Notes: generated by a model not told the origin, from the letters alone. Positions 27,001 through 63,630 are shown, counted from the stretch's first letter. The stretch: DNA of 64,000 nucleotides from Mytilus californianus (GCF_021869535.1 NW_026262593.1:29574001-29638000), one strand, 5' to 3'. A program made the numbers and translations.

Positions 27001-27099
27001 TAAATTTCGTGCCTCCGAATCGCTATTTTGGTTTTATTTTCACCAGTAACGCTTAATCCTAAACATATGAAAGTAAAGAAAGTCAAATACGAGGCCTTT

Positions 27100-27235: not shown

Positions 27236-27629
27236 ATTGAAACAATTAACATTTCTCTTCACATGTTTTTTTTTTATAAAATTTGATTAGTTTATTTACC
27301 AATTCCGTAATTGACTCTGTAATATTAGTTGTTTCCCGTAGGAGGGACATAATTTTTCTCTGACAACGAAGAGCTATCGAAAAGAGAAAATATGTTCGTG
27401 TGTAATATTGAAGTTTTTCAAATCTTTTATTTAAGTCAAAAAAAGTCTTTTGTTAGGCTAAAAACTTTCGATATCATTGTTATCATTCATCAAAAAATGG
27501 TAAAAACTCCTATATATATCTTTCAACTTATCATGATGTTCATGGGAAGCAAAACAGAATCATATCAGTAAAAGTATGAAGTAATATTACAATGAGTTGG
27601 GATTAGTTAGCTTGTCAAAAATATAGTTG

Positions 27630-28447: not shown

Positions 28448-28665
28448 ACGACATAGTTGTTTTTCGTTCATTATTTTGTACATAAATTAGCCCGTTAGTT
28501 TTATAGTATGAATTGTTTTACATTTGTCATTTCGGGGCTTTATATAGCTGACTATGCGGTATGGGCTTTGCTCATTGTTGAAGGCCGTACGGTGACCTAT
28601 AGTTGTTAATTTCTGTGTCATTTGGCTTCTTGTCTCATTGGCAATCATACCACATCTTCTTGTGT
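28448..28665 (-). mobile_element. Family B copy
   Basis: agctgactatgcggtatgggctttgctcattgttgaaggccgtacggtgacctatagttg...cattggcaatcataccacatcttct. Confidence 0.85.
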
Positions 28666-30888: not shown

Positions 30889-31129
30889 ATTCACATTACG
30901 ACCATTAATGTCTCCTCCAGTAATGCTTGAGGCCGAAATGGTTGAAAATCCAAAGTCTAATACAAACGTTGAAGAACTGATAAAACCAAAAGGACTTAAA
31001 ATAAAACCAAATCCGGACAAGGAATCAGAGTTTTGCATTACCTCAGTGTAAACTTTGGTTAACGTAAAATCACGGCAAAAATAAGAAAAAGCATCACACA
31101 TCGAATTAAACATTCGGTGTCTAGGAAGA
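30889..31129 (+). pseudogene. Pseudo-exon (80 codons, two in-frame TAA) that seeded the 156-bp array
   Basis: aattttactgaaacag|A FTLRPLMSPPVMLEAEMVENPKSNTNVEELIKPKGLKIKPNPDKESEFCITSV*TLVNVKSRQK*EKASHIELNIRCLGR|gtaagt. Protein family not recognised. Confidence 0.45.
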
Positions 31130-32654: not shown

Positions 32655-32760
32655 GAAAAAACATGTTCGCCGTACGGTGACCTAAAGTTGTTAATTTCTG
32701 TGTCATTTGGTCTCTTGTGGAGAGTTGTCTCATTGGCAATCATACCACATCTTCTTTTTT
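32655..32760 (-). mobile_element. Family B fragment
   Basis: gccgtacggtgacctaaagttgttaatttctgtgtcatttggtctcttgtggagagttgtctcattggcaatcataccacatcttc. Confidence 0.85.
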
Positions 32761-33297
32761 TATATCTATTTGTTTCATTTGTGTATAGTTAAATTGGACT
32801 TTTTTAAACTGTGAGTACTCTTTGATGGACATAATTTAAAAGACTTTTTTTCAACTGTTAACATATTAATATGACCAAATATCAACTAGTTATTTAAGTG
32901 AACACATACTTTTCCAAAAAACAACCTACTCAAAGATTAAAAATAAACAAACGTCATAGTATGTTGCCATGGTAATTCGTCAATGTTTCATTAAATTTTT
33001 ATTTAGTCATGTTTTACTGCTAAATTTGCAATAAATTTATGGTAAAATATATGCCTTTTGCCACAACAACCTTTGCGTCATACTACAAGACATACACTTT
33101 CAAATTAAACAAGCCGTGTGATAGGATCTTGTTAGAATTATTTTTTTTAATTGATTTTGTTGTTGGTGGAACACCATTTGACTGTACAGAACAAACAAAT
33201 CAACATAGGAACATGGGATTTATTATTAAATCAAATATTATGAATGAGAACTCTTAAACGTGTATGAATAAAGCAGAGTATATTTCAATGAGACAGA

Positions 33298-33764: not shown

Positions 33765-35235
33765 TGTGCAGAGTATATGTCAATAAAAAAGATACAGGAT
33801 ATATGTCAATGAGAAAGATACAGGGTATATGTCAATGAGGAGGATGCAGGGTATATGTCAATGAAGAGGATACAGGATATATGTCAATGAGAAGAATGCA
33901 AGGTATATGTCAATGAGAAGGATGCAGGATATATGTCAATGAGAAGGATATAGGGTATATATCAATGAGAAGGATACAGGATATATGACTATTAGAAAGA
34001 TACAGGGTATATGTCAATGAGAAAGATGTAGGTTATATGTCAATGAGACATGAGCAGAGTATATGTCATTGAGAAGGATGCAGGGTATATGACAATGAAA
34101 AGGATGTGCAAGGAATATATCAATGACAAGGATGCAGGGTATATGTCAATGAGAAGGATGTGCAAGGAATATGTCAATGACAAGGATGCAGGGTATCTGT
34201 CAATGAGAAAGATGCAGGAAGTATGTCAATGAGAAAGATACAGGGTATAAGATAAGATAAGATAAATTTTATTAACTAATTTGGGCCCCGTTGGGTATTA
34301 AGATTATATTTAAGAAAGAAAATCCAATAAATGACAGAAAACATATCAAATTACAGACACAAATATACAATATATAAATACTGCATATATGTCATTGAGA
34401 AATATACAGGGTATTTGTCAATTAGAAAGATACAGGGTATATGTCAATGAGAAAGATGCAGGGTATATGTCAATGAGGTGATGCGTAAGGTATATGTCAC
34501 TGAGAAGGACGTAGGGTATATATCAATGAGACGGATGAAGGATATATGTCAATGAGAAGGATGCAGGATATATATGTCAAAGAGAAAGATACAGGGTATA
34601 TGTCAATGAGAAAGATACAGGATATGTCAATGAAAAAGATACAGGATATGTCAATAAAAAAAGATACAGGGTATATGTCAATAAGAAAAAAACTGGGTAT
34701 ATGTCAATCAGAAGGATACAGGGTATATGTCAATGAGAAAGATACAGGTTATATGTCAATGAGAAAGATATAGGGTATATGTTGATGAGAAGGATACAGG
34801 GTATATGTCAATGAGATGATGCGCAGCGTGTATGTCAATGAGAATGATACAGGGTATATGTCAATGAGATGATGCGCAGCGTATATGTCAATCGGAAGGA
34901 TGCACGGTATATGTCAATAAGAAGGATACAGGGTATATGATAATGAGAAGGATACAGGTTATATGTAAATGAGATGATGCGCAGGCTATATGTCAATGAG
35001 AAGGATACAGGGTATATGTCAATGAGATGATGCACAGGGTATATGTCAATTAGAAGGATACAGGGTATATGTCAATAAGATGATGCGCAGCGTATATGTC
35101 AATGAGAATGATGCAGGGTATATGTCAATGAGAAGGAAACAGGGTATATGTCAATGAGAAGGATACAGGTAATATGTCAATGAGATGATGCGCAGGGATT
35201 ATGTCAATGAGAAGGATGCAGGGTTTATGTCGATT
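33765..35235. repeat. 26-bp minisatellite (gtatatgtcaatgagaaggatacagg) with 28-bp variants
   Basis: Dozens of diverged direct repeats without spacers, interrupted at 34248-34385. Confidence 0.97.
34248..34385 (-). mobile_element. Short 5'-truncated non-LTR retroelement 3' end inserted in the minisatellite
   Basis: The minus strand ends ...agttAATAAAatttatcttatcttatcttatctta, i.e. a polyA signal followed by a (TTATC)n tail. Confidence 0.7.
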
Positions 35236-35261
35236 AGACAGATGTAGGGAAAATGTTAAAG

Positions 35262-38200
35262 AGACGATAAAAAATAACATCTCAACACCATGCATGTATA
35301 GAAATATGGTGATATCTCCCGTCGAGCAGCAAGAACCATGACGAAGGAGCATTCGTTTGGCTGTTGGAGATGTATAAATACACAGTCATGTCCAATCGGA
35401 ATGGTTACATTAAATCTGAGACGCGTATTGGAAGAGTACAACTGTCTTTGGGCGTTCAAAAACCATTGCAACAACCCATCGAGGAGTATGCATAACTGAA
35501 GCCCTTGTCGGAAAATTACAACGATCTCTGCACAGTCAAAAACCACAACACAACCACCCATATGAGGGGTCTATATGACATGCAGCTATGCTATCTTTAT
35601 CAAACATACGCTCTTTTTCAGTGGAATTCCAAATAATCAAACCTTAATTCTTGTCGACCCACTTGCTAGATTTATTTTCAATTTGTTTTCGTCTTGAATA
35701 TGCATGCTGAACGTAAACCAACCATCAATCAACAATCAATCAATAAAAAATGATGATCAATTCAGGACCATTGTTTTCTAAAAACGAACGAAATTCTACA
35801 AAAAAAATGTCTTTTGTCGTTAGGAGATACATATTATTCTGTTTAGAAAATGGAAAGTTCAGACTTTTTTTCAAAATTAATTGACTTAAATAGTGCATAT
35901 TTATGCTGTTTATGATTACAAGTCATTAACATTTTAAATTCCTGTATATTAAACACAATTTATGAGTTTTTTTATTACGTTTTTAGAATTAACCCGATCC
36001 TTAGGGCATACATTTGTACTTCCGAAAATCAAACAAGATTAATTAAAAGTGAATAAAAATGTCGTGATTTTGTCTACACAACATACCAAGGATTTATATA
36101 GTAATTAAGATTGTACTACATAAATCCTTAAACCTACGAACCAGTTTTCAGACGGACAGTTTTTTGTTATTGTAAAATCTATAAGAATGTAATTTTCCTA
36201 CACATATTCAGTCACTTGTCGCATTCTTCCTTAGTAATCAAATACTAACCAATGTAACAATTGACAAGAACAAATGTGTAATTAAAGACACGTTTCGTTC
36301 TATCACATGTTCTCAATAGGTCAAATAGGTCCACCAGGAAGCATGAATATTTATGCATACAGACATGGATACGTAAGATGCATGTCTAAAGAAATTACAG
36401 TGTGGCTTAAAAATAACATTGCGCGTAAATTTCTCGTTTCGTCATGGTTGTTTTGGGATAGAGAAAAATGCTCGATCTTGCACGTGTAAGGGTGTATTGT
36501 ATTGATGGAGTAAAATATTTATATCCTACAAACTTGACTCAATTTTCAATTTCATTTTCAACCGAAAGAAAATACCATTATGACAATGCACAAGTACATA
36601 CGCGCGCGCATCAATATATACCAAAATTACGACATTGTATTTTATAAGAAAAAAGAGGTAGCCTAGGGCTTTTATCCCCTGAATTTATTTCACACCAAAT
36701 ATCATTTTCTCAAAGTCCTTCAATCTTACTTAAAATCCACAGTACCATAGATTCATATGTGTACTTTCAAGTTTTAATACCTTTTTGGCGTATTTCAGAA
36801 CATAATCATGAACAAATTGTAAATGCCTAAAGATGGCTCAAAACTACAATTTGGACAGGTTTTTTGGTGAAAAATATGATTTATTAAAAAAAATGTATGG
36901 GTGTGGTTCCTTTTTGAATTTACGTTGGAGTTCTTTTTTTGTTTGTTTTGTTAAATGCACGATTAAAAAATGACACCTCAACACCATATATAGAAGTATG
37001 GTTGATATTTCCCATCGAGCAACAAGAACCATGATGAAGGAGCATTCGTTTGACTGTGGGGATATAAAAATACAAAAGGCACGTCCAATCGGAAAAGTTA
37101 CGTTAAATCCTGACACTTGTATTAAAAGAGTGCGATGGTGTTTGTGCGTTCAAAATCCATTGAAACAATCTTTCGTGGGGTATGCAAAACTGAGGCCTTC
37201 TTGGAAAAGTAAAACGCTCTCTGTGCGATTAAAACCAACAACACAACCACCCTTTGAGGGGTCTATATGACGGGTCTATATGACATGCAGCATTGCATGA
37301 ATTCTATCTCTATCCAACATACGCTCTTTTTCAGTGGAATTTGACATAATCCAACCTTAATTCTGGTCGACCCACTTTGTAGAATCTACTTGTTTGATTC
37401 ATTTTCAATTTGTTCTCGTCTTTGGTATGCATGAAATATTTGCTATTGAACGTAAACCAACCATCAATCAGGCAATCAATCAATAAAAAATGACGTACAT
37501 TTCAGGATCATTGTTTTACTAAAAACGAACGAAATTCTTTAAAAAAAACTTTCTTCTATCGTTAGGAGATTTATACGTATTAGTGCAGATTTGTTTAATT
37601 CAAAATTAATTGACTTAAATAGTGCATATTTATGCTTGTTTATGTTTACAAGTCATTAACAGTTTAAAGTCCTGTATATTATACACAATTTATGAGTTTA
37701 TTTATTACGTTTTCAGAATCAACCCGATCCTTAGGTGATTCATTTTTTACTTCCGAAAATCAAGCGAGATTAATTAAAAGTGAATAAAAATGTCGTAACT
37801 TTGTCTACACAACATACCAAGGATTTATATAGTAATTAAGATCGTACTACATAAATCCTTTAACCTACGAACCAGTTTTTAGACTGACAGTTTTTTGTTA
37901 TTGTAAAATCAATAAGAATGTAATTTGCCTATCCATACTTACATGCACATTCTTCCTTAGTAATCAAATAATAACCAATGTAACAATTGACAAGAACAAA
38001 TTTAATGTGTTGTTAAAGACACGTTTCTTTCTATCACATGTTCTCAATAGGTCAAACTAGGAAACATGAATATTAATATCATATAGACATGGATGCTTAA
38101 GGTGCAAGTCTAGAGAAATTACATTGGGGCTTAAAAATAACATTGCGCGTAAATTCCTCCTTTAGTCATGGTTGTTGAGAGAGAAAGAAAGAGAAATACT

Positions 38201-38640
38201 CGATCTTACACGTGTAAGTGTGTATTTATGGAGTAAAATGTTTATACTATTATCCTATAAACTTGATTCAGATTTCAATTTCATTTTAACCGACAAAAAA
38301 TACACACGCGCACATCAATATATACCAACATTACTACATTGTATTTTCCAATTCTTTATAAGAAAAAGAGGTAGCCTAGGGCCTTTTTCCCCCTGAATTT
38401 ATTTCACACCAAAATGCCATTTTCTCAAAGTCCTTCGATCTTACTTACAATCCACCGCTAGTATCAAAGATATATATGTGTGCTTTCAAGTTTTAATGAC
38501 AATTTGGCGTATTTCAGAACATCATTATAAACAATTTGCAAATGCTATAAGATGGCTTAAAAGGATAGTTTGGACAGTGTTTTTTTTTCCTTTTTTTTTT
38601 TTTTGGCGGGGAGGGGGGTAAAAATTTGATCAATTATCAA
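35262..38640. repeat. Old tandem duplication of ~1.7 kb (35262-36960 and 36961-38640)
   Basis: Collinear diverged matches at ~1700-bp offset, e.g. agaaccatga.gaaggagcattcgtttg (35335/37025), taaatccttaaacctacgaaccagtttt (36121/37853), aagaaaaaagaggtagcctaggg (36647/38360). Confidence 0.92.
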
Positions 38641-39945
38641 AAACATGTACGAGAATGGCATTCCTGATCAAGGAAGTTGTTAAATATGTTGTTTTTCAGA
38701 TACAAATTAATTTATTTCGATAAATGATATACTCCAATGCAAAATACTACAAAAACATGTAAAATTTTTAAATTGAGCTTCAACAGCGATATGTGGCGGT
38801 GAATACTCTGTGATTCTTTGGAAATATGTAAAATTGTTGATAACTATCTAAAGTATACTATATAAACTCTTTAACGTTCAAATTTCATTGGTTTTAACAT
38901 ATTTCTGATTTTGACCCTGTAAATGAAATAATTACAGGGGAAATTGGCTCTACCGTTTTTCATTAATCAATTAATTAATGTTCGCTTACGTCACTGTGTC
39001 AAGTATTTTCATGCATTGTCAGGCCTAGAACAAACTAAGATAAACAATACATCAAATACATGCAAGTACGTATCGCACATTGGATCGACGGTTGCGGGAA
39101 ATTTGGACTTCCAAAGGAAAAATAGATAAAATACAACTAATCGTCCTGCTGCAGCTATTTTAATGTGCTTATGTATATATGTATGTATTACAAAGATCCC
39201 TCCGTGATTCGGAGCACCCCTCGAAGTTAGTGTGGAATCTGTGTACACTCCCTGTCAGGTTTAATGGAGATGTGTAACTCCCTTATTCAGATAGAACATT
39301 TCTCTATGTGCTTTACTGTTAGTACAATCCATTCAACTCTGATAAAAAGCTCACCGACATGCCTTTTATTTCAAACTATATGAGGGAGTTAATCGAATGA
39401 GAAAACGACACAGCACCAAATAAAAATAATGATAATAAATGATGTTAAAAAAATTATTACAAATACAATTTTATTTCATGCATGCATAGTACACCATCTT
39501 TTTATTGCATATTTGAATTACTTTATTTATTTTAAGGTGGTCTTTTTACTGTTTATTACATAATTTAAGCTTGATGAGATTGAAATAACGAAGATATAAA
39601 CACTTACTAATATTCTGATATAGCTGGAACATGGTGTGCTGTCCCTCTAGGTCTAGCTGTTAATTATACCACGGTCTATACAGACAATAACATTGAAATG
39701 TCCCTACAAATAGGTAAGGGTTTATCATACCGTAAACATCGTCACTGATGTTGTCTGTGATTGATTTGGTGATAATAAGCAATCGATCTTCCTTAGTGTG
39801 GCGTTACAACATACAAATACATTTAACGCTTAGCTTATGAATAAACATCTTCAAACAACATCAATTACTAGTAGAAGCATGATAAATCAAAGTACTGAAG
39901 TACTGAACATCGGATGACCACAAGTTCTTGAGGATGGTCAAAAGC

Positions 39946-40027
39946 ACTTGTCTCAGAAAAAAACAACATATCTCTTTACCTGAAACTGAGGTTAATGTAC
40001 AGAGATATATTTTTTTCTGAGACAAGT
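39946..40027. repeat. 82-nt hairpin with an 18-bp perfect outer stem
   Basis: acttgtctcagaaaaaaa...atatctct...agagatat..tttttttctgagacaagt. Confidence 0.8.
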
Positions 40028-41439
40028 TCGTGCGTGGATGATGAATAAATGACAGGAAATTCAACTTCACCGTAATAACTATTATATTGTAGTGATACAA
40101 ATCAGTATACACTGATTTGTTGTTTATATTATATTAAAATAACAGTTACATATATATATATGATTTGAATCCATTTGTATATCATTCTATTCTACTATTC
40201 TAAAAATAGTGCAATGCAAGTGCATGGTGGACACTTTTCTGTAAAAAATCGATTTTTCTAAGATTGGATACGAGTAGGCATTCATAAACAACTACAGAGT
40301 TACCGGTCCTTAACGGTATTTTCACAAAACGTTCATTGAGATATTCTTCCGCATGCTTTAACACAATTTTTCGGTACGTGTGCATTGATATTATCAATGA
40401 TTTTTTACTTATATATATATATATATATCTAACTACAAAACATTTTCATATTATTAATTTATGTTGTAAACAAAAATATTTTTATCGGTATTCATTGAAG
40501 AGATGTATTTATATCAAACGATAAGGAATGTTATTTTGCACTCGTTTATGTGCGCATATTTATCATGTTTATAGATCGGTTACAAACCCAAAACTAATTT
40601 ACATAATGGAAATCTAGGCGATAACAATACATCGGAATGACCTCAAGGTCATCGCGATGTAAAAATGGAAATTTATTAAGGATAAGCATTTTCTTTAAAG
40701 TTTAGTGCAAAATATGTTCATTAATTCAAAGAGAAGTGCCAATCATTAATCCTTATGGCTTGTTTAAAAACAACATGTCCCACTTATTTTGGACGAAGCC
40801 CTATTCTAATTAGTGAAGGAAGAAATGAAGAATTAATATGCATATGCATGACTGATTGACAGGCTTATGTTAAATTAAATCAAAATGACAAATGATGAAT
40901 TTGCTGCGTTTCAGACGAATTTTTGGATAAAATTAGCCAAAACTTTTGAAATTTGAGGAGTACATTAATCGATTTAATTTGTAAATTGCAAAAACCATAT
41001 ACATGTAGGTTAAAAGATGGAGCTTTAACAACACAGAGGTTTCTTTAATTCGTCTTGCTTTTAAACTGCTTTGTACCAGTTGCATCAATCACAATTGTTG
41101 ATGAACAGCAGGTGAATTGAAAAAGTTTCTCTAAAAAAATCTGGAAAAATCCATCATTTGTTTGTATTGGACTAAAAAAGAATAAATTATTTCATTAAAA
41201 TTTCCTCTACAAGTCATATTTAGCAAACTACAGATATTATCATTTTGTAAATTATCAAATTTGGACATCATAAAGATAATTGCCAATAATAAGAATATAT
41301 CTCATTCAAAATGACCAATTAATTTCTGCTATTCCAATAGCTAACTGTTTATGCACATCTGCATATGTTCAAACAGTTTAATATTATAAAAAATACACTT
41401 ATTTGAAAATACCTTCCTGGAGATAACATGTTACAGATA

Positions 41440-48988: not shown

Positions 48989-49345
48989 CATAGGAAAATT
49001 TCACTCACGTGAATTTGGATTTATGTGAATCTCACCTAAAACGAGCTTATACGTGAAACTCCCATGAATTGATTTTACTGAGTTTAACGTGTATCTCATG
49101 TGAAACTCGCATGTAAATCACATGAATTTTTTTCACGTGAAAATTTTCAAAATAAAGTTATTCCTATAACATCTAAATTTTCAAATCTGATGAAAATCAT
49201 GAAAAATACCAATTTTTTTTTTTGTAAAGTTCACGTGAAAATCAACTGAAAAATTTCACGTGAGATTCATGTGAATCTCAATTCACGTGAGTTTCACGTA
49301 TAAGCTCGTTTGAGGAGAAATTCACGTGAGCAAAATTTGCCTTTG
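48989..49345. mobile_element. MITE with ~60-bp imperfect TIRs, TA flanks and multiple CACGTG motifs
   Basis: TA|cataggaaaatttcactcacgtgaattt..aaacgagcttatacgtgaaactc ... gagtttcacgtataagctcgttt..aaattcacgtgagcaaaatttgcctttg|TA. Confidence 0.85.
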
Positions 49346-50547
49346 TAATGAGTTTTTAAACCGAGATGGAGCCTGAAACACATCTTTTTACATTTTGTTG
49401 CATAAACATTGAGGTGTCTTTATTGTTATTTAATCTTGGCCTTCGACAAACCTACGATTAATGTAAGATAAGATTAAAGATATAAATGTTTCTAGTTAGC
49501 AGTATTTACAGCTTAGAATGTGGTTGTGAATTCTCTGTAAATACATATATTTGAAAATAAACTATTAAAACAGGCAATTAATTTTATTTCAAGAGAAAAT
49601 ACAAAGCAATAAAAATCTCTCTCCTTCTAGAAACTACCTACATTCAGTATGTTCAATAAGAACACAATTGTTTTTTTCCAATAGAATGTCGTTTGCGCTA
49701 ACCAAATAATTAGTATTTGAACTTTCAATTCCCTATATAGTTCTTAAGTAGTATAAACTAAATTCTAGCTGGACACAGTCAATGTGATCTCTTTTCACAT
49801 GTCGAATCTCAAGGAAATTAATCTCATTGTAATGAATGAGAACATGTAAATTGTCAGTAGAGTAATGATTATTGGTTTTATGATAACTACGTATATCCCA
49901 AATCTAGGACAAAATGAAATTAAGCTCAACCATTTTAAGTTAAGTACCAATTAATCTTATTTTTTTATCAAATTAAACATTATTTAAAAATTCTTTTTGT
50001 TATATGACATATCATTGTATTACATTTTCCTTAACAAATCTTGATAAGGGGAAATCTCGCAAAGACTTCCATTTGAACTCCCTAGTTGACGGAATAAGCA
50101 AAAAACACACGTAAAAAAGGGGGGTGGGGTATTTGAAATTTTTGCCAAAATATTCACTGTTAAATAAGTTACTTGTAACTTCAATCTCAGTTCAAAAGGA
50201 TAGGTCACCCTCTGTCTTTGAATTTCAGTAAGAGCACGTGCTACACAATCTAGACATCAGCGGGTTTTAGAAAATGGCATATGCACAATTAAAGTTTCAT
50301 TGTTCCATTATTTATAATTTGACATTTTCAATAACTCTCGACACCAACAAATGACATGTAAGGCTTACAGGTGAATTCGAAGGATCGTATGGAAGGTTAA
50401 GTTATTCAAGAATATCATTGGTTTTAACGGACTTAAACTTTTATTGAAAAAGAACGGATATCGAACAAATGATTATTTGCGGGATTTTCTTGTCTTTTCT
50501 CACTTTTATATAATACTTGAAGATGAAAAAATATTGAGGCCTTTCGT

Positions 50548-50745
50548 ATCCTCACCTTTCCGGAGCACCTGAGATCACCCCCGGTTTTTGGTTGGGTTCG
50601 TGTTGCTCAGTGTTTAATTTTCTATGTTGTGGTTTGTATACTGTTGTTTGTCTTTTGGTCTTTTTTCTTTTCTGCCATGGCGTTGTCAGTTTAAATTTAT
50701 ATTCGACTAAAGAGTTTGACTGTCCCTTTTTTTTTATTTTTCGCC
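50548..50745 (-). mobile_element. Family A copy
   Basis: cctttccggagcacctgagatcacccccggtttttggttgggttcgtgttgctcag. Confidence 0.85.
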
Positions 50746-51316
50746 TCTCTCAGTCTCAATTCAAACATAAAAGTGAATTTAATGGAACATAAAAGTGAAT
50801 TTAATGAAAAAATAGTTCACAACCAAGATAAGCCATCGTTATGGTAAGTATAACAAACATACAGACAAATATTGTTCAAGTAAACCACTAGTAATCGTTC
50901 TGAACATGTATCAAATATTTCCCACTGGACGTAAAGCAAACACTAATCAACCAATCATACTTCTAGTAATATTCATATAGAGTTTTGTACAATCTTGACT
51001 CCTGTTGAGGCGACCTTTACATTTTACCTGTCGGTGTTGTTGTTTGCCAGTTATTGAACTTTTCTATTATGGACATTGACAATAAAAGGCGCAGGTGCAT
51101 TTTATTCAAAATAAAGACAGTAGTTATTCACAGTATACTATAGTGTTTTTCATATTTTGTATGAATGACATTTATTGGTTTTTTTATTCGACATGAATAG
51201 GAAGGTTATGTGTACAGTGTTCTCCAATCAGATTTAAAAATGTCCATGTCATAAATACGCATAAATCGAAAAACAGCCGTAAGAAAAATTATACATAAGA
51301 ATATTAATTTTTTATT

Positions 51317-52248
51317 TCACTCAAATTCTTCTTCCGCTTCGCCCACTTCGATGCTAGTTTCACCTCCTTTCGGATTACAACACTTTGTCTTTCGGATACC
51401 CGAAGAGTTCGGTTTACCACACTGTCCCTCTGAAACTGTACTGCCGATGCATTTTTCCATACAATAACATCGGGCCTGTTGAACAAGCGATGACGCAGTA
51501 GTTGCTGTTTGTTCTGAGTCGGGACCTTCCGTTTCCTGTTGTTCAGTTGTGGTTTTTGTTGGTGTAGCAGACGGCTGAATCGGTATAAGAGCTCCTGTGT
51601 TTTTTTCTGCAGCAGATATCACTGTTTGCTTTGAAGCAACGTTACTGTATGAGATACCGGACTGCTTTGAAGCAACGTTATTGTACGAGATACCGGAATG
51701 CTTTGAAGCAACGTTATTGTATGAGATACCGGACTGCTTTGAAGCAACGTTATTGTACGAGATACCGGACTGCTTTGAAGCAACGTTATTGTATGAGATA
51801 CCGGACTGCAGATTTCCAAAATATTTTACAGGCTGGGGACTTTGAATTAAAGATGTAGAACTTTTTGCAACCATTGTTTTATTAATAGTAGGCTGTCCAA
51901 CGTCTGATTTGACGACGTCTAAAATTTTCATCAAGTTTGCTACAGAAGTGATTTGCTTTGTACCTTGACTTTTGCCATGTGCTTGAATGTATTTCTTCAA
52001 TGCCTCAGTGTAGGAAAATTTTAGCTTATCTTGGTTTCCAGAATTCAATTTTGTTTTCAGTGAATTAATGAAATTTTGATTTCTATAAGAAAACTCCTTC
52101 ATGTTCACCCCATTTTTTTCAGCTATTGCATTTATATAAGAAAAATCGTTTGTCTTTTTCCTTTTTGGTGAAAATGTATTTGCATGTTTTTCTGTATTTA
52201 TTGGCCTTGCAGAAACAGTGTCTTGCTTTACTGGTACCACTGGGTTGC
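51317..52248 (-). CDS. Coding exon 2 (terminal) of an uncharacterised 329-aa secreted protein with 12-aa repeats and a six-Cys defensin-like C-terminal module
   Basis: 932-nt uninterrupted frame after the acceptor ttattttgtattttag|GC (phase 1). It ends in TGA followed immediately by AATAAA (51316-51311) and joins in frame with the exon at 57855-57798. Confidence 0.85.
51627..51809 (-). repeat. Five in-frame 36-bp coding repeats (QSGISYNNVASK)
   Basis: tgctttgaagcaacgttattgtatgagataccggac x5 on the + strand. Confidence 0.97.
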
Positions 52249-52789
52249 CTAAAATACAAAATAATTTCAATTTATATAACAACTAACTTTACAGAAAGTG
52301 TTTTGGTCGTATATAACTGGGTTTTGCTGGGTCCCAATTCTTTAATGAGTTTTAAAACAATTTCATTTTCAGTATGAATGCAGACTTACAAAATAAGCGC
52401 AAGTTAGATTTTGACAAACTCGTTTTTTTGTTTGCTGTGTGTCCACTTTCTAAGGGGTTTCGAAGGTCCGAGTTTGGAAAAACACACACAAAAATGGTTT
52501 ATTTCAGAAAAACGCTTGCTATATTTTTTGTCCTTTTTGGTTTTGATTTTTTTTCAATAAGTTTTGGATTTTCAAATAATTTGGTCTCGATCATCACTAA
52601 AGAGACATTTATTATCGAAATGCGCATCTGGTGCAAAAAAATGGTACCGTTAATGTTATTGGAAATCTAAAAATTCAAACTCTAACTTGACAAGTGATTT
52701 ATTTGTCCTACATAATAATTTGGTTCAAAATATTAAAATCCCTTATTTGTTACAATAGTTTGGTAGATAAAATAATAAAACAGCCAATA

Positions 52790-52890
52790 TAAAAATAAGG
52801 AGTGGTGGTATGATTGCCAATGAGACAACTATTATACCACCAGAGATCAAATGAAGTGGATGTAAGCAATTATAGGCAACCGTACGAAGA
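52790..52890 (+). mobile_element. Family B fragment (intronic)
   Basis: aataaggagtggtggtatgattgccaatgagacaact..ataggcaaccgtacg. Confidence 0.7.
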
Positions 52891-53782
52891 ATGTTTTTAA
52901 AGACGAGTTTCTATATGGCATTTTTAATGATATTCTGTGAGTGTGAATGTTATTTGTGTATGTGCGTTATTCTTCTTGTCTGGCTGGTAACATTTTAAAG
53001 TTTTAATTTAAAAAGGAAAATAAAAATAAGACATGACCTAAGTTAAATAAATAAAATCATAGAGAGAACACAAACCAATTACCGAGGTCACATAAACGAT
53101 CAAATAAACCAAGAACTAATAATCTGTATTTTTTTTCCTACATTCCAGGACAAGGTTTTTAGACCAATAGAAAAGTTGTAAAAGTTAATAATTAGTCTTA
53201 GTTTGCTATAAATACTTAAAACACCATAGCAAAGTTTGTAAATATCAACAATAACACGAAGTGACATGTTCACATGACAATGAAATGCAATAAATAGTTT
53301 ATTAATTACATGTTTTAGTTTTTTGTCACCTTTCCGTTATTTACAATTACAATAGATTAAAAGAACATTGCTTTTTGTTATATAAGTTTTCCTTTTATGC
53401 ATTGTCAAATCAGATTTGAAATAAGACAAGGAGAAGTTATCATTGGTAAAATACAAACAATTAGTGACAGTTCATGCCATTGTTTTACATGATAAAGGTA
53501 CCAAGAAGTACGAGTTAGTCAACCAATAAACATGCGGCCAGTGCACTAAACAAACATTTTTCAATTACCTGTTTAAACGTACAATATCGATGATTAATTA
53601 CAATTTTATTTCTCATTGTTTTTTTTTCCCCACAGTTATGTAGAAATAAATGACATAAGAAATACCGATTATCAGTTCAATTGTTTTATACAAATCTAAT
53701 GTTGAATGAAAGGTTTCAAACTAGATGATCCGTAAGACACTTCTAACTCGAAATGCTGACAAATTCTAAGGGTAGCTATATG

Positions 53783-54040
53783 TGGTATTGTTTAGCTAAC
53801 CTACCTAGCCCAAAGGACAATGTCAGCTTTTGCCATCACTTTGCGTCCGTCGTCTTTCCATTCGTCATCGTAAACTTTAAACCAAATAAATTCTCCTCCA
53901 AAACTACTGGATTAAATGTTACCAAATTTTACCTAAAATGGCCCCTGTTGCTTAAAATTGAATTTACAGTTACCATTCAACACAATTCTTGTATTTTATG
54001 CAAAAATCCTATATGAGCAATACATGCTCTCTGGAACTGC
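53783..54040 (+). mobile_element. pearl/HINE-like non-autonomous element fragment (intronic)
   Basis: tttagctaacc..agcccaaaggacaatgtcagcttttgccatcactttgcgtccgtcgtc..cgtaaacttt resembles the 5' end of bivalve pearl/HINE elements. Confidence 0.65.
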
Positions 54041-55659
54041 TTACTGACTTATCGGACAATTAAGTCTTTGGATCAAAAATAGAAACGTGGATAGTATTTT
54101 TAATGCAACAATAGATGCAGCTTGCTCGTTTGTAATGACTATGGAAATTGAAATCATCAAATGAAAAATGTGAAACATACTTTTTTTGTTAGCTAAAAGT
54201 TTAATAATAATAATAATAATAAAGAATTCAGGTTACAGAGATGTATGAAAAAATTCTTGTGGCGAGCTTAAACAACCAATTTACTGATCTATACATTAGT
54301 CGTTTGGATTGATATGTAATAAGTGAGTTTCTCATCTTACAAAAGTTTCATCATGGATAAGTCCGTTAAGATTATTGTTTTCGAGGAAACGTGAGAGGAA
54401 ATCGCTTTCAACATGCTTATTGCTGCATCTTATTCGATAATAAGTTTGGGTGTTCTGCCAAATGGTCCATTAAAAACTCTTTTTTTGTGTGTTTTAGCAT
54501 TTGGAATCTATACAAACGCCACTTGCATTTGAAAATCCCATTTAAACTTTCAATCAAATTTATAAGGAAGATAGTAAATCTCTACGGCATTAAAAAGAGA
54601 GGCGAAAAAACCAAAAACGAAAATGTTGAAAATGCAACCCGAACCCCCAAAAATGGAGGGGGATATCAGTTCTTCGGAACGGTAAGCATATTATTAAGCT
54701 TCACATGTTTTATCCGTCGTGTTGATCAAGGTAGATACTTTTTCGGTGTTGAATCTTAATCAAGGAAAATAGCTTCAACAATTTGAATATATCCGAGGTC
54801 ACTTGTTACACAGATCATAACTTAATTAGCTTCCTTGTAAGCAGCAATCTTAATCTAGGAAATCATGAAAGGGAACGCAATTTCTTGAATATCGTATCCA
54901 CTAAATGATATATATATATATATATTGTTTCTGTTTGGTAATAAATTAATAATAAGATCTATTTTGTTACATCTTATGATCCGTTTGTTTGACAATCGCC
55001 AATGGCAGTCAGCAGGGTTTAAGAACATCAGTTGTTCGACCTGCTAGTCAAATGCGTTTTGTTAAAATATACTTTTTCACTCATTTTGGTCTTTTGGAAA
55101 ATGTTGTTTGTGCTGTATTTAGACCCCTCTACCAAGAAATTTGTTTTGCATGCACACGTATAAAAATCTTCTCAGTTTGTGATTTTGACGTTACGAAAGA
55201 GGCGACTATGCCAGATGCTAGATTAATGACGAACTACGAGTCATCTTATGGCTTTCAATATTGCGTTGAACCCATACTGTATAGTAAGGAATATAACAGA
55301 ACGAGATGATAAAATTTGCAAATACTAAAAAAAAAACAAAGGCCTGATTTATCCTTCAACAACTATGACAGACAACCAGGACAACTACTGGATTACAACT
55401 ACAAGCTACTGGTTTGGGACCGTATATGTCCCATGTTTGTGAACACTTGAAATATGTCTCCTAACCAGGAATTAAGCGTAAGAGCACAACATGCTAACAA
55501 ACTACTAAAAGGAGTTGGAAAAGGCTTCACTCATCAGATTGTTACTGAGCACCAAAAATGTAAAAAAAAAAAAAAAAGACAAAAGACATAAAATAGATCT
55601 TAAGTTACTCGCAGTTTCAGAGAGCTAGTTAATGGCCAGTTTTAACTTATCAGTAAACA

Positions 55660-56710
55660 TTATCACACATTTTTTTACAAAAACATTGGGTTTTGCATAT
55701 GCAATAACCGCAGATTTGCCCTAGTCAGTCATACTCCTGCCGGGGCAAATAACTGGTTATTGTGCCCTGTTATGACGTCATAAGAATTATTTGGGAGCTT
55801 CGTAATATAATTATAGATAATAACATGTCCTTTTCCATATCGGCCCTAGTATCATCCTGAGACTCCCATATGAGATCATACATCATATGAACCCAAGGCG
55901 CTAGCCGAGTGCTCATATCGGTCGAGGGAATTTTCTTTTAGTATTAGTGTTCTTATTTCTTTTACAAATTCTGCTGTCATATTTATCGACGTTTCTCGTC
56001 CGTCATTGTTGTTAGGAGGAACGTTATCACATATTTGTAGCATTCTAGTCATATTCCTACCTGGGGCAAATAACCGGTTGTTGTGCCCTGTTATGACGTC
56101 ATTGTTGTTACGAACGCTTATGACGTCACAACAGGGCACATTAACCGGTTATTTCCGGATAGGAATATGTAAAGATAAATAAGAAGATGTGGTATGAGTG
56201 CCAATGAGACAACTCTCCATCCAAGTCACAATGTGTAAAAAGTAAACAATTATAGGTCAAAGTACGGCCTTTAACACGGAGCCTTGGCTCACACCGAACA
56301 GCAAGCTATAAAGGGTCCTAAAATGACTAATGTAAAACAATTCAAACAGGAAAACCAACGGTCTAATCTATATAAAAAACAACAAACGACAACCACTGAA
56401 CAACAGGCGCCTGACTTAGGACAGGTGCATACAGATGCACCGGGTTTTAATGTTTTAACAGGCGCCAACCTTCACCCTAACCTGAAACAGTAGTGTTACA
56501 TTACAACATAAAAAGACACCTGTTTTAAAGGTATACTAAATAATAAATCTGCAGTTATTGCATATGCACAATCAAATGTTTTCGTAACAAATATGTGATA
56601 AATGAAGTTATTTCTCGACTCATATGAGCCCTCGGCTAGCGCTTTTGGCTAAAATGGGAGTCTCGGGATGATTCCAGGGCCGATATAGAAGAGGACATGT
56701 AATCTATAAC
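55660..56710. mobile_element. Cluster of oppositely oriented MITE-like fragments with a central palindrome; split by a family B' insertion (56172-56520)
   Basis: 55660-55718 inverts to 56543-56600 and 55820-55930 inverts to 56605-56710. 56050-56169 is a long hairpin containing TGACGTCA twice. Confidence 0.7.
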
Positions 56711-57797
56711 TATTTTCTCAGAAAACTTTTTCACTCTAACGGATTTCTCGTACAGACATCATAAGCAGTCTGAGAAAGAATGTATATTTGCAATGGCAAA
56801 ATAAAGTATCGACATGATTCAGGAACATATTAAGTGTTAATACTTAATAATTAATATATATACTTAATTATTTATCCAACTTAGAAAATAAAATAAATGT
56901 TAGTACCGATAAAGAAATAAATCAAAGATCTTACTACAATGTTCATTGATAACCCTCAAGAATAAGGTTTATTCAAAGGGCCATTAACCCTTAATTGTTG
57001 GTATAATTCCACACTTTATTTTATATTAACTCTAAGAACAAAACATTGAAGTATATAACATCGCCTTTCGACGGCCTAGTGATTGAAGAAGTTATTAAAT
57101 ATATCGGGATTTCGAAAAAGTTGAGAATATTTAGTACGGCTCTACGGTTCTTTGAAGAAAACAAGGCTTTTAACGAAACAAAAAAACAACCTTCTTGGAT
57201 TTTACACGTTTGGTTTACGGTGCCTGTTATAAAAGCGGCATTCATAGTATCTCCCGCGTCATTTTGAATCGCCAATACAATATGCCACCCTAGATTTAAT
57301 TATAGTATTGGTGAAAGACAACGACAAGACAAATAAGTCAACAAAACGCTACAAAGAAGACTGAAGACTGAACAACACTAACCCCATCAAAAATGTATGG
57401 TCCAGAAGGGTAAGCAACTTATAAGGAGTTATACTGTAGTACTGCTTGCATGTTTTATCTCTCTAAAAGTAACTATAAAAAAACAAACTATACAAATGTT
57501 TTGTTTTGAGGGTAATATATTATTTTGAAGTTTTAAAGTATACCAAAACTAGAGTATAAAAGCATGCATGTTGTGCATATTCATAGAAAGGAAAAAAGAA
57601 ATTTATTTATTTTTTAAATTTTTTAAATCAGCTTCTTGTTCTTGTTCTTTGAAAATGAGTTAAATGCGTTAAAACAAAAACACTAGTACCTAACAAAATT
57701 TGGAATCATTGACTCTTATAATTATATGTGATTACATTGATTACAAATACAATCTCGTCAAACATAAACTGATGAAAAAAATTATTTAAAATCTTAC

Positions 57798-57855
57798 CGT
57801 CAGTTAAACTCACAACACCAAGAGCGAAGATGAATGTTAATATACAGTTCTTCAT
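57798..57855 (-). CDS. Coding exon 1 (signal peptide) of the secreted protein
   Basis: ATG AAG AAC TGT ATA TTA ACA TTC ATC TTC GCT CTT GGT GTT GTG AGT TTA ACT GAC G|gtaaga = MKNCILTFIFALGVVSLTD plus a phase-1 G. G+GC gives Gly, then NPVVPVK. This is a classical n/h/c signal peptide. Confidence 0.8.
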
Positions 57856-59689
57856 TTCAAAAGATAAATTAAGTTTTTTTCTCTAAAATTATGAAAAAGC
57901 TGTCCTTAAGCTTCTAGTAATTTAGATAGAACATGTTTCATATAATCGTTATTATTATACTCATCATTGTATTGTAATACACATTAATCACCTAATATAT
58001 ATCCGACAACTAACAACATGTATAACGCGATTGACACCACTTACACCTTTCGTTTCATGAAAAGAGGGTCAAACTAAATATAAAAAGAGTAATGGCCATT
58101 AATTAATAAACAATGTAGATCACATCAAACAAGTCAGCTGTTCCTTTTACTTTACTTAATATTTAATTTAAATCATCATGCTTTTTGAAAATTCAAAAGA
58201 AAAAGGTCGACAGAATTGAAAGATATCTATTGGGACATACTTATTATATAAGGAAGCTTGTTAAACAAATAAATGGAAGAATTAGGTGGTTAGTTAAGTA
58301 ATCAAATAGAATTAATTATACTGACATTTTAAGTAATTTTTCGAATTAGAAGTTAAAATTTGAGCACCGCTTTTAAAAGTACAAAATGTAATAACATATA
58401 ATTCATGTCCAAAGTCAGGAACCTCTTCATTGATATTTGAATAGCATACTTTTTGTTTTGTTTGTTATTTGGAGAATTTGATTTTAAAAGAAGATCTTTT
58501 ATTGTTTCTGTTTAATTCATTAACCTGTAGCTAGCCATATACTCATGAGCCTGTTCTTATTCTGCGACCTCGTCAGTGCAGTGTTTGCCTTGTGTCATTA
58601 ACTTTTGTTATTGTTATTTTGAGGTTTTTGTTTATTTTGTTTATCTTCTGTATGATCTCTTTTTTATTAACAACTTCTGAGATTCAGGACTATGTAAAGA
58701 TTTGCATATTGTCGCGCGAGTATTGTAATGTTCTAGCCCGTATTTTTCTAAATATTGGTAAACTGAATATAAAGTTGAAAAAGCAACCCCCCTTTCTGAA
58801 GATACAACAATACAACACAACATTTTTTTCTCTCAAAAAGTATTTCCTATGTTTCTATTGGAGGTAGACCAAGGGTTTTGGAATTCTGTAAATAATATTC
58901 CCCAATTCTGCAATGCATGATTTGCTGAGAACCACTCAAACATTTGGTGCAAATCATGCAAAAGTTTAAGCATGATAGTAATACAATTATTATTTTAATA
59001 ACAATTTTTAAAGTGAAAACATAACTGAAAAATAATGTAGATTCAACACTATAGCACTACATGTATTTTGCTCTGAACTTCCATTGGCCGACTAGATTAT
59101 TAGGATACATTATAATGCAATAGGAAGTGGATAGTTTTGAAAGAAATCGTAGAACGCAGAAATTATGTATTACTGTTGTTTATGGAGAAAGATGATTGCA
59201 CCTGGATCTCAAATATAACGCTGTCTTGTATATATTGTTTCTCTGGATTTCTTTTTGGCTGTTTTTGTCGTTGAATTGCTGTCTTATTTATATATACCCT
59301 CACCTCCTTTCATTTATTTCTACAATGTATAAGCCTTAATTTGCCATAAGTGTATATGAAATAAGTTAAAACATTTCATCATTGTATGCTGTTTAACTTA
59401 CTGGATGTTTGAAAGAAACTAAACACTTCTGGGTATCACACAATATGTTACTTTAAAAGAGGCGAAAATACTAATAGGGACAATTCAAAGAGAAACTGAC
59501 AGCACAATTGAATAAAACGAAAACCGACTTAAAGACAAGCAACAGTCTATAAAACACTACATAGGAAACAAGAGACTTAACAACGCGAAATCTTCAGGGT
59601 TTTTATCAGTGCTTTGTTGACTGTTTTCGTTTTTTCGTCCTTTTTCTCTTGATATCGATCTTGTCCTTGAAATTCTTTTTCGATTGCGA

Positions 59690-60020
59690 ATTTTTCCGAA
59701 GGGTGACTGGGGATTAGAAATATGGTCACTCTTGGTCTTCTTCCGACCGGCAGTAAAACCCTTGCCAAAGTTGGGCGTCCGTTTGGTTGTGCGGAATATA
59801 TAAATTCACAGCCACGTCCGGTCAGAATGGGTACGGTAGATCCGATGCCTCGAGTAGAGAGAGTGCTACGATCTGTGCACGTTAATAACTCTTATATATT
59901 TCCTGTAATGATAAAAGCAATGTGAACGCACCTGTCACGTGCGTGCTGGGTTCGCACTCCCAACTGAAGTGTTGACAGTCTATTACAGTAGATAATAGAC
60001 TACTTCGCCACCGAGGCCCC
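59690..60020 (-). mobile_element. tRNA-derived SINE (possibly a two-part chimera)
   Basis: The minus strand begins ggggcctcggTGGCGAAGTAG (box A-like, 60011-60001) and has GTGCGAACCC (box B-like, 59957-59948). The body is shared with 22325-22500. Confidence 0.75.
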
Positions 60021-60612: not shown

Positions 60613-62790
60613 ATGGAAATAACCAGAAAAAGAAGCAATCGTGTAAAAGGAAAGACAGTCATGTTTACACCCGGTTAATCTGTAGCTAATACTGCAACTA
60701 AAACCAAAAAATCAAGTACTAGTAGTAGTATCAATGAAAAAAACTGTTGATTATGAATTAAATAAAAGAAAGGCTGCGAGAAAGCTGCAGAACGGTTGTA
60801 CACAGTAAAAACAGAATTAAGTCCAGGAAATTTGGTTTTTATTTGTTCTGCTGCTGCTTATGATGAATTTAAAATAATAACACAGTCAGTCATTAATAAC
60901 TCTGGTCTTCTGATTAGTAAAACTGAGACTAAGAATAAAATAGGAGCCGTTGTATCTGAATCATTAGCTAAATGCGAAGGGAGCACAAAGTTATTTGTCT
61001 TGAACTTTTTTAACACTACGACAAAGGTACTTTTGGTAAACAAGCTTATATTAAAGATTTCATTACCTCCCCTTTTGGAGACTGTGTACTGTGTACTGTG
61101 TAAACATTGATCGTGACCACAAATTTAGACTTTAACAATCAAATAAGAGAGTATTGTAAAATGTTTTAGATACTACGCATCAGGGTAATTTAGACAAGGC
61201 AGCCAATGATGAGCACGGCTATCATAGCGTGAATAAACAACTAGCGTCTAGTACTAAGCAACTGACAGATGGGACATATTTAAACAGTAAGCAAATAACA
61301 GTACATAATGACGTCTCGTGTCCAATATGTGATAAGATCTGTGGTGAAGAATCTAAGGCAGTAGAGTGTGATATAAGTAATTCTTGCCTGCATTATAGCT
61401 GTGAAAAACTAACAAATAGTGAAATCCAAGTAATTGAGAATGATTAAACAGCAGGATATGTCTGTAGAAGTTGTAGTGAGTTGAGAGATCTGCAGTCTGA
61501 TCATGTCACAGGTGATTCCCTCTCTGAAAAAATCATGGTTTCAAGTAAGGATGAGGAAAATACTTCAAGAGTTTCAAGTTCGTCTGTATCAAGTGTTCCT
61601 AAAATACTAAAAGACAATATGACAAATTTTATTGTTATAGGTTGCATTTCTTTAAAAAATAGACAATGCAATTTCCCATAGGAACTCCCTTTACGGCTAA
61701 AACTGTGCCACTTTTACTATGAAGTTTCGTAAAAAAATATATCCTAGAATGGAAAGTTGATATGCACTATTTTTATTCAAAGATCAAAACATAGGGCTGT
61801 GCGGCATTATACGAGAAGTGATCTACATAACAGTTCGGTACAAATCGGATCAAATATTTTAAAAGAAGAAATGAACTTTCTAAAATTATAATTAACTCTA
61901 AAAGATAAAGGAATCAAACAAAAGGATAGTCAAATTTATAAATTACAAACAGAAGTGTCTACGCAGAAAAAAGAGCAATCAGCAAGTAGAGCATATGCTA
62001 TATAAAACTGGAAAATAACATTCGTGATTTAGAGCACTCTCTGTTAATTCAAAAAAAAAAGGCAACAGTCGAGCGAGTCTGCTACTAACAACAGGCAAAG
62101 CCTTCTTAGTGAAATAAATAACAAATCAGAATCAGAAAACTTAAAAAGTTGGTTCCTAGAACAGAGCCAACTGGAATTGGAAGTTTGTAAACAAGATAAT
62201 AAAATAAGTAATCTAAGTGATAAATTGATAGACTTAAGATTTGATAATAGTAATCAATCGACGCGCTACCGGCAAAGGCAAAATAGAGGGAAGCAAAATA
62301 AAGTATATAGGTCCAATCGAAAAAGCCAGGCACATTTAAATAGATACATTGAAAACCAGGATTGCAATTTTCAAAATGATTTCTCAGATTTTAATGGGGG
62401 CATGTCTTTTAGGCACGACGAATCTCAACTAAACTGTTTTCGTTCTGATGCTAGTGGTAGTGGCAATGAGGCTAATTCTGTGTTAGATGTTCAATCTAGT
62501 TATCTTGACAATTTTTTAGAGAATGGTCACTTTAGCAGGGGGGAAACGAAATGTCAAGCACAAGCGAGGAAAATATTTCACGAGAAATCGAAGCAAGCTT
62601 ATATACCGCCAAAAAAGCAAATGAAAAAATTACCACCGAGATTCCAACGTCTTCATCACCAAAAACTAGGGTGCATTCAGAGAGACAATCCAATGATGCC
62701 CATAAATTCTCAAACTACAAAAATGTAGAAAAATTTAATCAAAAGTGTCATGAAGATAAGAGTAACAATAACTGTGTAGAAAGTGTGCTG
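60613..62790 (+). pseudogene. LINE ORF1 relic (N-terminal conserved domain, PHD finger, coiled coil), split by a family E insertion at 61637-61800
   Basis: DYELNKRKAARKL..VKTELSPGNLVFICSAAAYDEFK..KLFVLNFFNTTTKVL; PHD CPICDKIC..AVECD..LHYSCEKL..YVCRSC; coiled coil IKQKDSQIYKLQTE..KLENNIRDLE. A YY1-like cgccatcttg lies upstream at ~60513. Confidence 0.8.
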
Positions 62791-63630
62791 AACATTTTAT
62801 CTTTTAACATTGAAGGTTTTATCTATGCTAGAGAAAACAGCTGATATAATTATGTTACAACAACATTGGCTACACAATAGAGAAAAACAAGTTTTAGAGG
62901 AATTTTAAACTGACTTTTTATGTTTATCAAAATGTTTTGATGACGATAAGACAAATGACAAATGACCCAATAGAAAGAAGGAGGGGACATGCTGGTGTTG
63001 CGATATGTGTTAACAAAAAAATACAAAATTTTGTTGAACTTTTACCGAATAGATGTATCAGAGTAATAGCTTCACTGCATAGAAACGAACGCAAAATACC
63101 TCGTGACGTTGTCTTTGGTGAGTTTTTGAAATCTAACGGTTTGTCAATTATATCAGCTTGTAAAAAACTAAACACCTTTTTTCATTTTAACAATAGAGAT
63201 GAATCTCAGATTGACTACTTTGTGGAAACTAAGATGTTAGCCAAAATAAACTTGTCATTTTACCGTGAACTTCAGAATTTATCGACTCATGATCCAATTA
63301 TGATTTCCATTGATTGTTGTCTTGAAGGGATGGATGTAAGCACTAAAAATCCAAGAACTTTACGTATCAAATGGGATAAAATTGACAAACAAAAATATGA
63401 AACTTTATTACAAGAGAATTTAAAGATTTTAAAGAAGTGCCTGTTTTGAATCTGTGGAAAATATTGGTAACATTTTAACAAGTTTTTCTAACATTTTTGT
63501 GAAAACTGGAAGTGCCAAAAAAAATCAAAACTCAAAATATAAGGGATTCTACGCTTCAAGAAGATTGCCTGACTGGAGTAGTTCATCTGATAAAGGTGGA
63601 ATGTACAGAATATATAACAGCTAACAGGTA
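62785..63630 (+). pseudogene. LINE ORF2 apurinic-like endonuclease domain (L2/CR1 group), internally deleted and 3'-truncated before RT
   Basis: LNILSFNIEGF, IIMLQQHWL, RGHAGVAICV, TFFHFNNRDESQIDYF, NLSTHDPI, IKWDKIDKQKY. No RT motifs were seen downstream. Confidence 0.85.

Follow-up and report, generated by a model that had tools for sequence, protein, structure and literature searches.

A stretch of 64,000 nucleotides (nt) from Mytilus californianus (GCF_021869535.1 NW_026262593.1:29574001-29638000), here termed the window, contains a two-exon gene on its minus strand at positions 51317–57855. The gene encodes a protein of 329 amino acids (aa) that is predicted to be secreted, mostly disordered and basic, with a mass of about 33 kDa, and it belongs to a small gene family of mussels. 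The protein carries near its C-terminus a six-cysteine module that is predicted to be alpha-defensin-like in its fold and its cysteine array. The gene is real, far beyond chance, as is evident from the length of its open reading frame (ORF) together with clear orthologues (E 1e-178), and confidence in the gene model is high. The explanation as a whole, i.e., a two-exon Mytilus gene for a secreted basic protein of a small mussel family with a role in extracellular host defence, is favoured tentatively, in a judgement that is close to balanced. The gene and its flanking elements are as follows:

57856..58116, minus strand: conserved promoter and 5' untranslated region, 91.6% identity to M. trossulus
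57855..57798, minus strand: exon 1, 58 bp, with the ATG start, 19 codons plus one base (phase 1), coding for the signal peptide; sequence read directly
52249..57797, minus strand: intron, 5,549 bp, with GT..AG ends
51317..52248, minus strand: exon 2, 932 bp, the terminal coding exon, with a TGA stop at 51319-51317
51311..51316, minus strand: candidate polyadenylation signal AATAAA, immediately 3' of the stop codon; sequence read directly

A 58-bp signal-peptide exon that splices in phase to a 932-bp terminal exon, giving 329 aa, had been proposed in a reading of the sequence alone (the sequence-only reading). These coordinates hold. The two exons joined by script give a clean coding sequence of 990 nt, or 329 codons and one terminal stop. 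The 3' end of exon 1 reads ...ACG and is followed by the donor GTAAGA (G/GTAAGA), and exon 2 begins at 52248, where the acceptor ...ttttag/GC follows a polypyrimidine tract. The mechanical ORF list begins at a TTG (52282) that lies within this intron tract, and the real start is missed, as had been noticed. The ORF is the longest in the window, which has a GC content of 33% (321 aa vs. 183 aa for the next). The intron contains dispersed repeats and a block (52967-53694) that shares 87% identity with the intron of M. trossulus; an Rfam scan shows no Rfam family at 49000-60000. At the position orthologous to the candidate AATAAA, the related locus L002 has AGTAAA.

In an ungapped comparison, 239 of the 261 bp upstream of the ATG (91.6%) match the M. 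trossulus sequence; this region includes a TATA-like box, TATATATTA, at 58001-57993, 146 bp 5' of the ATG. Exon 1 (81%) and the start of the intron (78%) both show lower identity to M. trossulus, and because the upstream region is the more conserved, the promoter looks constrained. A weak match to the promoter region is also found upstream of the signal exon in L003, a distant family member.

A word-indexed protein search finds three close clusters, with orthologues at E values down to 1e-178. The orthologues are CAG2223804.1 and XP_071146620.1 in M. edulis (the latter with the RefSeq name 'sericin-2-like'), VDI22942.1 in M. galloprovincialis, and a RefSeq protein of M. trossulus that is named 'putative uncharacterized protein DDB_G0286901'. 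The signal peptide of the full-length orthologue models is homologous to that of the window gene. The gene model is supported by RefSeq models of M. trossulus and M. edulis, whose first exon is likewise 58 bp long and in phase 1. The M. trossulus locus (L001) has a 58-bp exon 1 with the donor G/GTAAGA and an exon 2 about 4.8 kb downstream; M. edulis has two matching coding exons, a 58-bp phase-1 exon 1 and a GTAAGA donor, with an intron of about 10 kb. Orthologues had therefore already been deposited, and since the gene is present in databases, its earlier description as apparently novel was overstated; it is there only as uncharacterised proteins, and a literature search by accession, motif string, RefSeq name and sample accession found no paper on the gene or the family. 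The product of the window gene itself is absent from the protein database searched. Because of this absence, and because the signal-peptide exon sits 5.5 kb away, the source genome probably lacks an annotation of the gene.

Collinearity between the window and L001 runs from about 49.5 to 58.8 kb, with 70–87% nt identity. The sequence at 35360-41025 is also collinear with positions 19478-26047 of L001, which shows synteny with M. trossulus for at least 10 kb downstream of the gene. Across 35360-41025 the window is several kb longer than L001, and a segment is duplicated there (35360-35689 and 37086-37408). Presence-absence variation had been suggested for the gene; the synteny with M. trossulus and the four-species distribution, with orthologues in three congeners, give it no support.

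An exhaustive HMMER scan of 1.84 billion representative proteins gives 24 matches at E <= 0.001. Five of these are true relatives (P0001, P0004, P0005, P0006 and P0013) and the others match the repeat block only. A profile search added further members, including M. californianus LOC127720715, which represents a second subfamily. Outside mussel records, the family was found only in environmental contigs that are unnamed. It is apparently confined to mussels, since the named matches are mussel proteins and no other named bivalve protein is among the matches of the exhaustive scan. All members have an N-terminal domain with three F-S-Y motifs, an acidic linker, a Cys module with the motif C-[FYV]-C-x3-C-x6-[EKR]-G-x-C-G-x5-G...CC, and an acidic tail, which is Glu-rich in one subfamily and poly-Asp in the other (subfamily B). 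The window gene carries all hallmarks of the family, i.e., the 58-bp phase-1 signal exon, the F-S-Y motifs, the linker, the module motif with its CC pair, and the tail. The first exon of LOC127720715 is likewise 58 bp long and in phase 1, with the same donor; in L003 a candidate phase-1 signal exon lies 5.9 kb upstream, and L002, L003 and L006 retain the exon 2 acceptor together with its phase (phase 1 in L006). Neither the window nor the fetched loci contain tandem paralogues. Pfam shows no significant match for the whole protein, seven relatives or the isolated module, PDB sequences show no match to the module or family profiles, and a search for stand-alone short peptides (32–101 aa) related to the module found none. 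The family is uncharacterised, without a Pfam model or domain annotation.

The layout described earlier (signal peptide, basic region, five 12-aa repeats, linker, six-Cys module and acidic tail) is present in full. Exon 2 encodes the following segments:

51902..52246, minus strand: conserved basic N-terminal domain, residues 21-135, net charge +11, three F-S-Y motifs
51806..51901, minus strand: variable segment, residues 136-167, fast-evolving, net charge +3
51626..51805, minus strand: five tandem 12-aa units with the consensus SGISYNNVASKQ, a coding minisatellite, net charge +5
51470..51625, minus strand: acidic Thr/Glu/Gln-rich linker, residues 228-279, net charge -3
51377..51469, minus strand: six-Cys module, residues 280-310, C-x-C-x3-C-x9-C-x12-CC, net charge +3
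51320..51376, minus strand: acidic C-terminal tail, residues 311-329, net charge -6

The signal peptide is assigned on the basis of one Lys, an uncharged core of 14 residues and small residues at positions -3 and -1 (Thr and Gly). The N-terminal region, with an isoelectric point (pI) of 10, had been read as a Lys/Asn-rich basic region; by alignment, it is the best-conserved domain of the family, with F, S, Y and K columns that are invariant in all members. It has no Pfam or PDB match, and its AlphaFold2 model is of low confidence and displays helices only. The linker carries a core, TTTEQ.ETE..SEQ, that is conserved in the subfamily of the window gene, and it is disordered in the AlphaFold2 model. 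The full-length model has a mean predicted local distance difference test score (pLDDT) of 40 and is disordered except for residues 260-293 of the exon-2 product.

Ratios of nonsynonymous to synonymous substitution (dN/dS) were determined by the Nei-Gojobori method against M. trossulus and M. galloprovincialis-type alleles. For all non-repeat codons dN/dS is 0.20–0.27 (dS 0.32–0.41; dS to the M. edulis complex is about 0.3–0.5, which points to a more distant Mytilus species), and the earlier view of an intact gene under selection is confirmed. The N-terminal 112 codons show the lowest values, 0.04–0.09, followed by the Cys module and tail (0.13–0.23) and the linker (about 0.5). The variable segment before the repeats has a dN/dS of 1.3–1.6, a value that comes from only 33 codons. 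Purifying selection acts on both the F-S-Y domain at the N-terminus and the Cys module at the C-terminus.

The 12-aa repeats are restricted to the Mytilus orthologues and are absent from other family members; the paralogue LOC127720715 has unrelated 9-aa repeats at the matching position. Tandem Repeats Finder reports a 36-bp period with 5.1 copies and 95% matches at 51627-51809, which corresponds to the five 12-aa units. The number of units varies by species: the window has 5, a loose 12-mer pattern count gives 9–13 in M. edulis-complex proteins, and the length difference between M. edulis alleles is exactly 12 aa. This spacer, the repeat block, is Mytilus-specific and variable in length. A protein of 139 aa (P0015) has an 11-aa tandem unit, approximately GVTYDLASK[HQ]x, that resembles the 12-aa unit of the window gene, and it has neither a signal peptide nor a Cys module. 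The likeness between the repeats is probably due to chance or convergence.

The Cys module was modelled alone by AlphaFold2 with 14 family sequences. The model displays three strands and a core pLDDT of 87–91 (about 90). Six Cys and three Gly are invariant in the module and an Arg is nearly so; the Gly two residues before Cys4 (G-x-C) is found in all 14 to 16 family sequences. When the model is compared with the PDB by Foldseek, 35 of the top 37 matches are alpha-defensins (HD6, HD5, Crp4, cryptdin 14, HNP1-4 and RK-1), with target-normalised TM-scores of 0.59–0.78 vs. about 0.4 for beta-defensins. The Foldseek E-values are weak (>= 0.1), as expected at about 32 residues. VIA-align, which is independent of Foldseek, was run against 48,161 representative chains and its top five matches are alpha-defensins. 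HD6 is the best of these, with a Z score of 3.9 and a root mean square deviation of 1.6 Å over 32 of 32 residues; beta-defensins reach Z 2.0–2.4. When the Foldseek list is re-ranked, 29 alpha-defensin entries stand ahead of the first beta-defensin. A viral structure library gives no match. We regard a defensin-type fold as probable for this predicted structure, with modest confidence.

The alpha-defensin array is C-x-C-x3-4-C-x9-C-x6-10-CC. The mussel module resembles it in having six Cys, the same spacings of 1, 3 and 9 (C-x-C-x3-C-x9-C) and a terminal CC. It also shares two Gly, one invariant and two residues ahead of Cys4, the other five residues ahead of the CC (G-x5-CC), and a cationic module that adjoins an acidic segment. 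The predicted three-stranded sheet superposes on whole alpha-defensin chains (HD6, HD5, HNP1-4, cryptdins and RK-1) at 1.4–2.1 Å. There are also clear differences. The mussel loop between Cys4 and Cys5 has 12 residues (10 in the M. californianus paralogue P0056), whereas that of alpha-defensins has about 9; these lengths fall beyond, or at the limit of, the x6-10 range. Alpha-defensins have a conserved salt bridge from an Arg after Cys2 to a Glu four residues after Cys3, and these positions are not conserved in the mussel family: Cys2 is followed by Met or Leu (by Thr in a single allele), Thr, Leu, Gly or Ser occupies the fourth position after Cys3, and a Glu or Lys is found instead three residues before Cys4. 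There is no similarity at the level of sequence profiles. The module is located near the C-terminus of a 329-aa multidomain precursor, before an acidic tail of 19 aa, whereas alpha-defensin precursors are about 95 aa; the mussel precursor has a conserved 115-aa domain and repeats in place of a short prepropeptide, and the host is a mussel. Alpha-defensins have been reported only from some mammals, where they are a late innovation, and their disulfides pair Cys1-6, Cys2-4 and Cys3-5 (PMC7203481). Because of the longer last loop, the unconserved salt-bridge positions and the lack of a profile link to defensins, the module is best described as alpha-defensin-like in predicted fold and cysteine array and not as a member of the alpha-defensin family, and convergence is more likely than homology. 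That the module would be a true alpha-type trans-defensin domain, with pairing 1-6, 2-4, 3-5 and an independent origin in mytilid mussels, is unlikely in our estimate. If it were, it would be the first alpha-defensin-like fold and Cys array outside mammals and would define a new class of multidomain defence proteins, which we likewise consider doubtful; in such a class, and this too is an unlikely arrangement, the basic F-S-Y domain and a variable-length spacer would carry the defensin domain.

Of the known invertebrate systems, big defensins (bivalves, horseshoe crabs, amphioxus) are the closest in organisation. They are also secreted, and in them a flexible linker joins an accessory domain at the N-terminus to a cationic six-Cys domain of the trans-defensin type at the C-terminus. 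Pairing of the beta-defensin type is 1-5, 2-4, 3-6. Big defensins occur in mussels and have a globular, hydrophobic domain at the N-terminus with a beta-alpha-alpha-beta fold, a pairing of the beta type, and a phase-1 intron that is conserved just 5' of the Cys region (PMC7203481). Their N-terminal domain is short and hydrophobic, whereas that of the mussel protein is about 115 aa, Lys-rich and basic (+11, pI 10). The mussel gene has no intron just 5' of the Cys region; residues 21-329 are encoded in one exon and the sole intron follows the signal peptide. Big defensins have the spacing and pairing of beta-defensins, and the mussel module matches beta-defensin structures less well than alpha-defensin structures. 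Membership in the big defensins was rejected in view of the basic N-terminal domain and a mature protein contained in a single exon.

Mussel MGD defensins, mytilins and myticins consist of a signal peptide, a cationic Cys-rich peptide and an anionic C-terminal extension. Their precursors are about 100 aa or less, the mature peptide follows directly after the signal peptide and has eight Cys in a cis-defensin fold, and the genes are multi-copy and hypervariable. The window protein is like these CS-alpha-beta precursors in having a signal peptide, a cationic Cys-rich part and an anionic extension at the C-terminus, and in being mytilid-restricted; it differs in having about 260 aa before the module and, in the model, no detectable helix in the module. 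The MgCRP-I peptides have a C-C-CC-C-C array, four exons, a short pro-region that ends in a dibasic site, and a hypervariable mature peptide (PMC4558851). They too are secreted, have six Cys and are restricted to Mytilus, and a phase-1 intron interrupts their genes in or close to the part that codes for the signal peptide. The window gene, with the array CxC-C-C-CC, two exons and no dibasic site before the first Cys, differs in array, exon number and dibasic site, and MgCRP-I membership was rejected.

The proposed mode of action of the window protein is as follows. The signal peptide would be cleaved behind Gly20 and the protein secreted. The conserved basic N-terminal domain may bind or anchor the protein to a partner, and the repeats, together with a probably O-glycosylated acidic linker, would form a flexible spacer. 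The cationic C-terminal module would fold into a three-stranded domain of the trans-defensin type with three disulfides and the alpha-defensin-like Cys spacing, and the acidic segments on either side would offset its charge. The pro-pieces of alpha-defensins and the anionic C-terminal extensions of mussel antimicrobial precursors likewise offset charge. The organisation would be like that of a big defensin, with an accessory N-terminal domain and a defensin domain, without homology to big defensins. The role would be in extracellular host defence at a mucosal surface or in the haemolymph. In favour of this role, the sole confidently folded part of the protein is a cationic domain of predicted defensin type, and a basic module lies between acidic stretches in all family members. 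A host-defence function, considered by itself, is plausible rather than probable.

Several results weigh against this interpretation. The fold rests on a single prediction, since there is no sequence-level similarity to any defensin, and on a shallow alignment of 14 sequences; AlphaFold2 may be echoing the Cys pattern. The module profile finds no defensin in the PDB at E <= 10, and of the Pfam defensin models only Defensin_beta is found, at E 0.14 and in one of 14 members. In absolute terms the Z scores (2.7–3.9) are low, which is to be expected of so small a domain (about 32 residues). The helices of the N-terminal domain are no more amphipathic than shuffled sequence, of which 1,593 of 2,000 versions are at least as amphipathic, and the very strong constraint on this domain points to an endogenous partner that is fixed. 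Only one copy of the gene lies in the window, and it is conserved and syntenic, whereas the genes for mussel antimicrobial peptides typically occur in many copies, are hypervariable and can often be dispensed with. Poly-Asp tails and repeat blocks are compatible with proteins of biomineralisation, shell, mucus or matrix as well. The Logan contigs that contain relatives are genomic and not transcripts, with ORFs that run through the intron polypyrimidine tract.

The sequence-only reading had left the choice between an immune effector and a matrix protein. The predicted defensin-type fold leans to the immune side, and a structural extracellular-matrix protein of byssus, shell or mucus, although rather unlikely, remains a serious rival. 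In a matrix protein, an extended glycosylated scaffold would be made up of the repeats and the Thr-rich linker, the Cys module would serve as a compact knob for cross-linking or capping, and the basic N-terminal domain and acidic tail would mediate electrostatic assembly or the binding of mineral or polymer. Repetitive secreted matrix proteins (shell matrix and small mucin-like proteins) similarly have a signal peptide, variable tandem repeats, a Thr-rich stretch, acidic tails and a restriction to certain lineages. The combination of signal peptide, repetitive low-complexity block and acidic tail (poly-Asp in subfamily B) agrees with this alternative, as do the independent repeat expansion at one position in both subfamilies, the mostly disordered prediction, the restricted lineage of the gene, the strong purifying selection on the N-terminal domain, which fits a fixed endogenous partner, and the RefSeq name 'sericin-2-like' on one orthologue. 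However, most family members have no repeats, and these are therefore not part of the core function; they are dispensable, whereas the F-S-Y domain and Cys module are conserved, and the window protein has no domain or sequence in common with the repetitive matrix proteins. Its composition (Ser 12.9%, Lys 10.4%, Asn 8.7%, with Tyr and Gly not dominant) is unlike that of the Tyr/Gly-rich mussel foot adhesives, the sole confidently folded part is defensin-like by prediction, and the accession numbers appear in the searchable text of no proteome paper.

Another secreted role is improbable. The protein could be a precursor from which cleavage at basic sites releases signalling peptides, or it could act in reproduction or on the gamete surface, with the Cys module as a receptor-binding ligand; defensin folds serve elsewhere as ligands and toxins. 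A KRKK basic cluster near the N-terminus is partly conserved and in subfamily A the first Cys comes after an R or K, but the basic residue there is not conserved in subfamily B and canonical dibasic sites flanking the module are absent. The segment with dN/dS >1 and the variation in repeat length between species would also suit such a role, but the ratio comes from 33 codons only. The weakest alternative, in which exon 1 is unused and the gene is a single-exon ORF, a pseudogene or mis-modelled, with a coincidental signal peptide, would agree with the finding of no spliced transcript among the Logan contigs examined and with the missing database protein and probable lack of annotation, but it is very improbable in view of a 58-bp phase-1 exon, donor and conserved promoter that recur in orthologues and in a paralogue of about 25% identity, an exon 2 with a canonical acceptor at its 5' end and no in-frame ATG before its codon 49 (an internal Met), and a coding sequence under purifying selection.

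The remainder of the window contains several repeated sequences. A near-perfect satellite at 31011-32427 has a 156-bp unit in 9 copies with 98% matches. Its translation produces two abutting minus-strand ORFs of about 150 aa with weak Pfam matches below the curated cut-offs; these were rejected as genes, as they represent translated satellite. A degenerate minisatellite at 33769-35264 has a 26-bp unit in about 57 copies and higher-order periods of 52, 78 and 105 bp. Two arrays with units of about 167–175 bp (1113-1942 and 7451-7940) have consensus sequences that are apparently reverse complements, and they may represent one satellite family in inverted orientation. A dispersed repeat of about 100–190 bp is found at 22709-22821, 25598-25706, 27090-27237, 28482-28673, 32669-32771 and 56175-56379; one copy is in the intron of the gene, and the repeat also occurs several times in L001 (approximately 318-483 and 10991-11183). 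Apart from the gene, the window ORFs of at least 150 aa consist of the translated 156-bp satellite and two plus-strand ORFs of 183 and 170 aa at 62177-63449. The latter two have no Pfam match and may be decayed remains of mobile elements.

The gene is conserved and under selection, and it is probably missing from the annotation of its source genome, and it belongs to a family for which no Pfam model is defined. Its most test-worthy feature is the predicted alpha-defensin-like module. To our knowledge, invertebrate trans-defensins are currently limited to big defensins and the beta-defensin-like panusins. If the mussel module is alpha-defensin-like, either the scaffold arose by convergence or the superfamily would be more widely distributed than thought.

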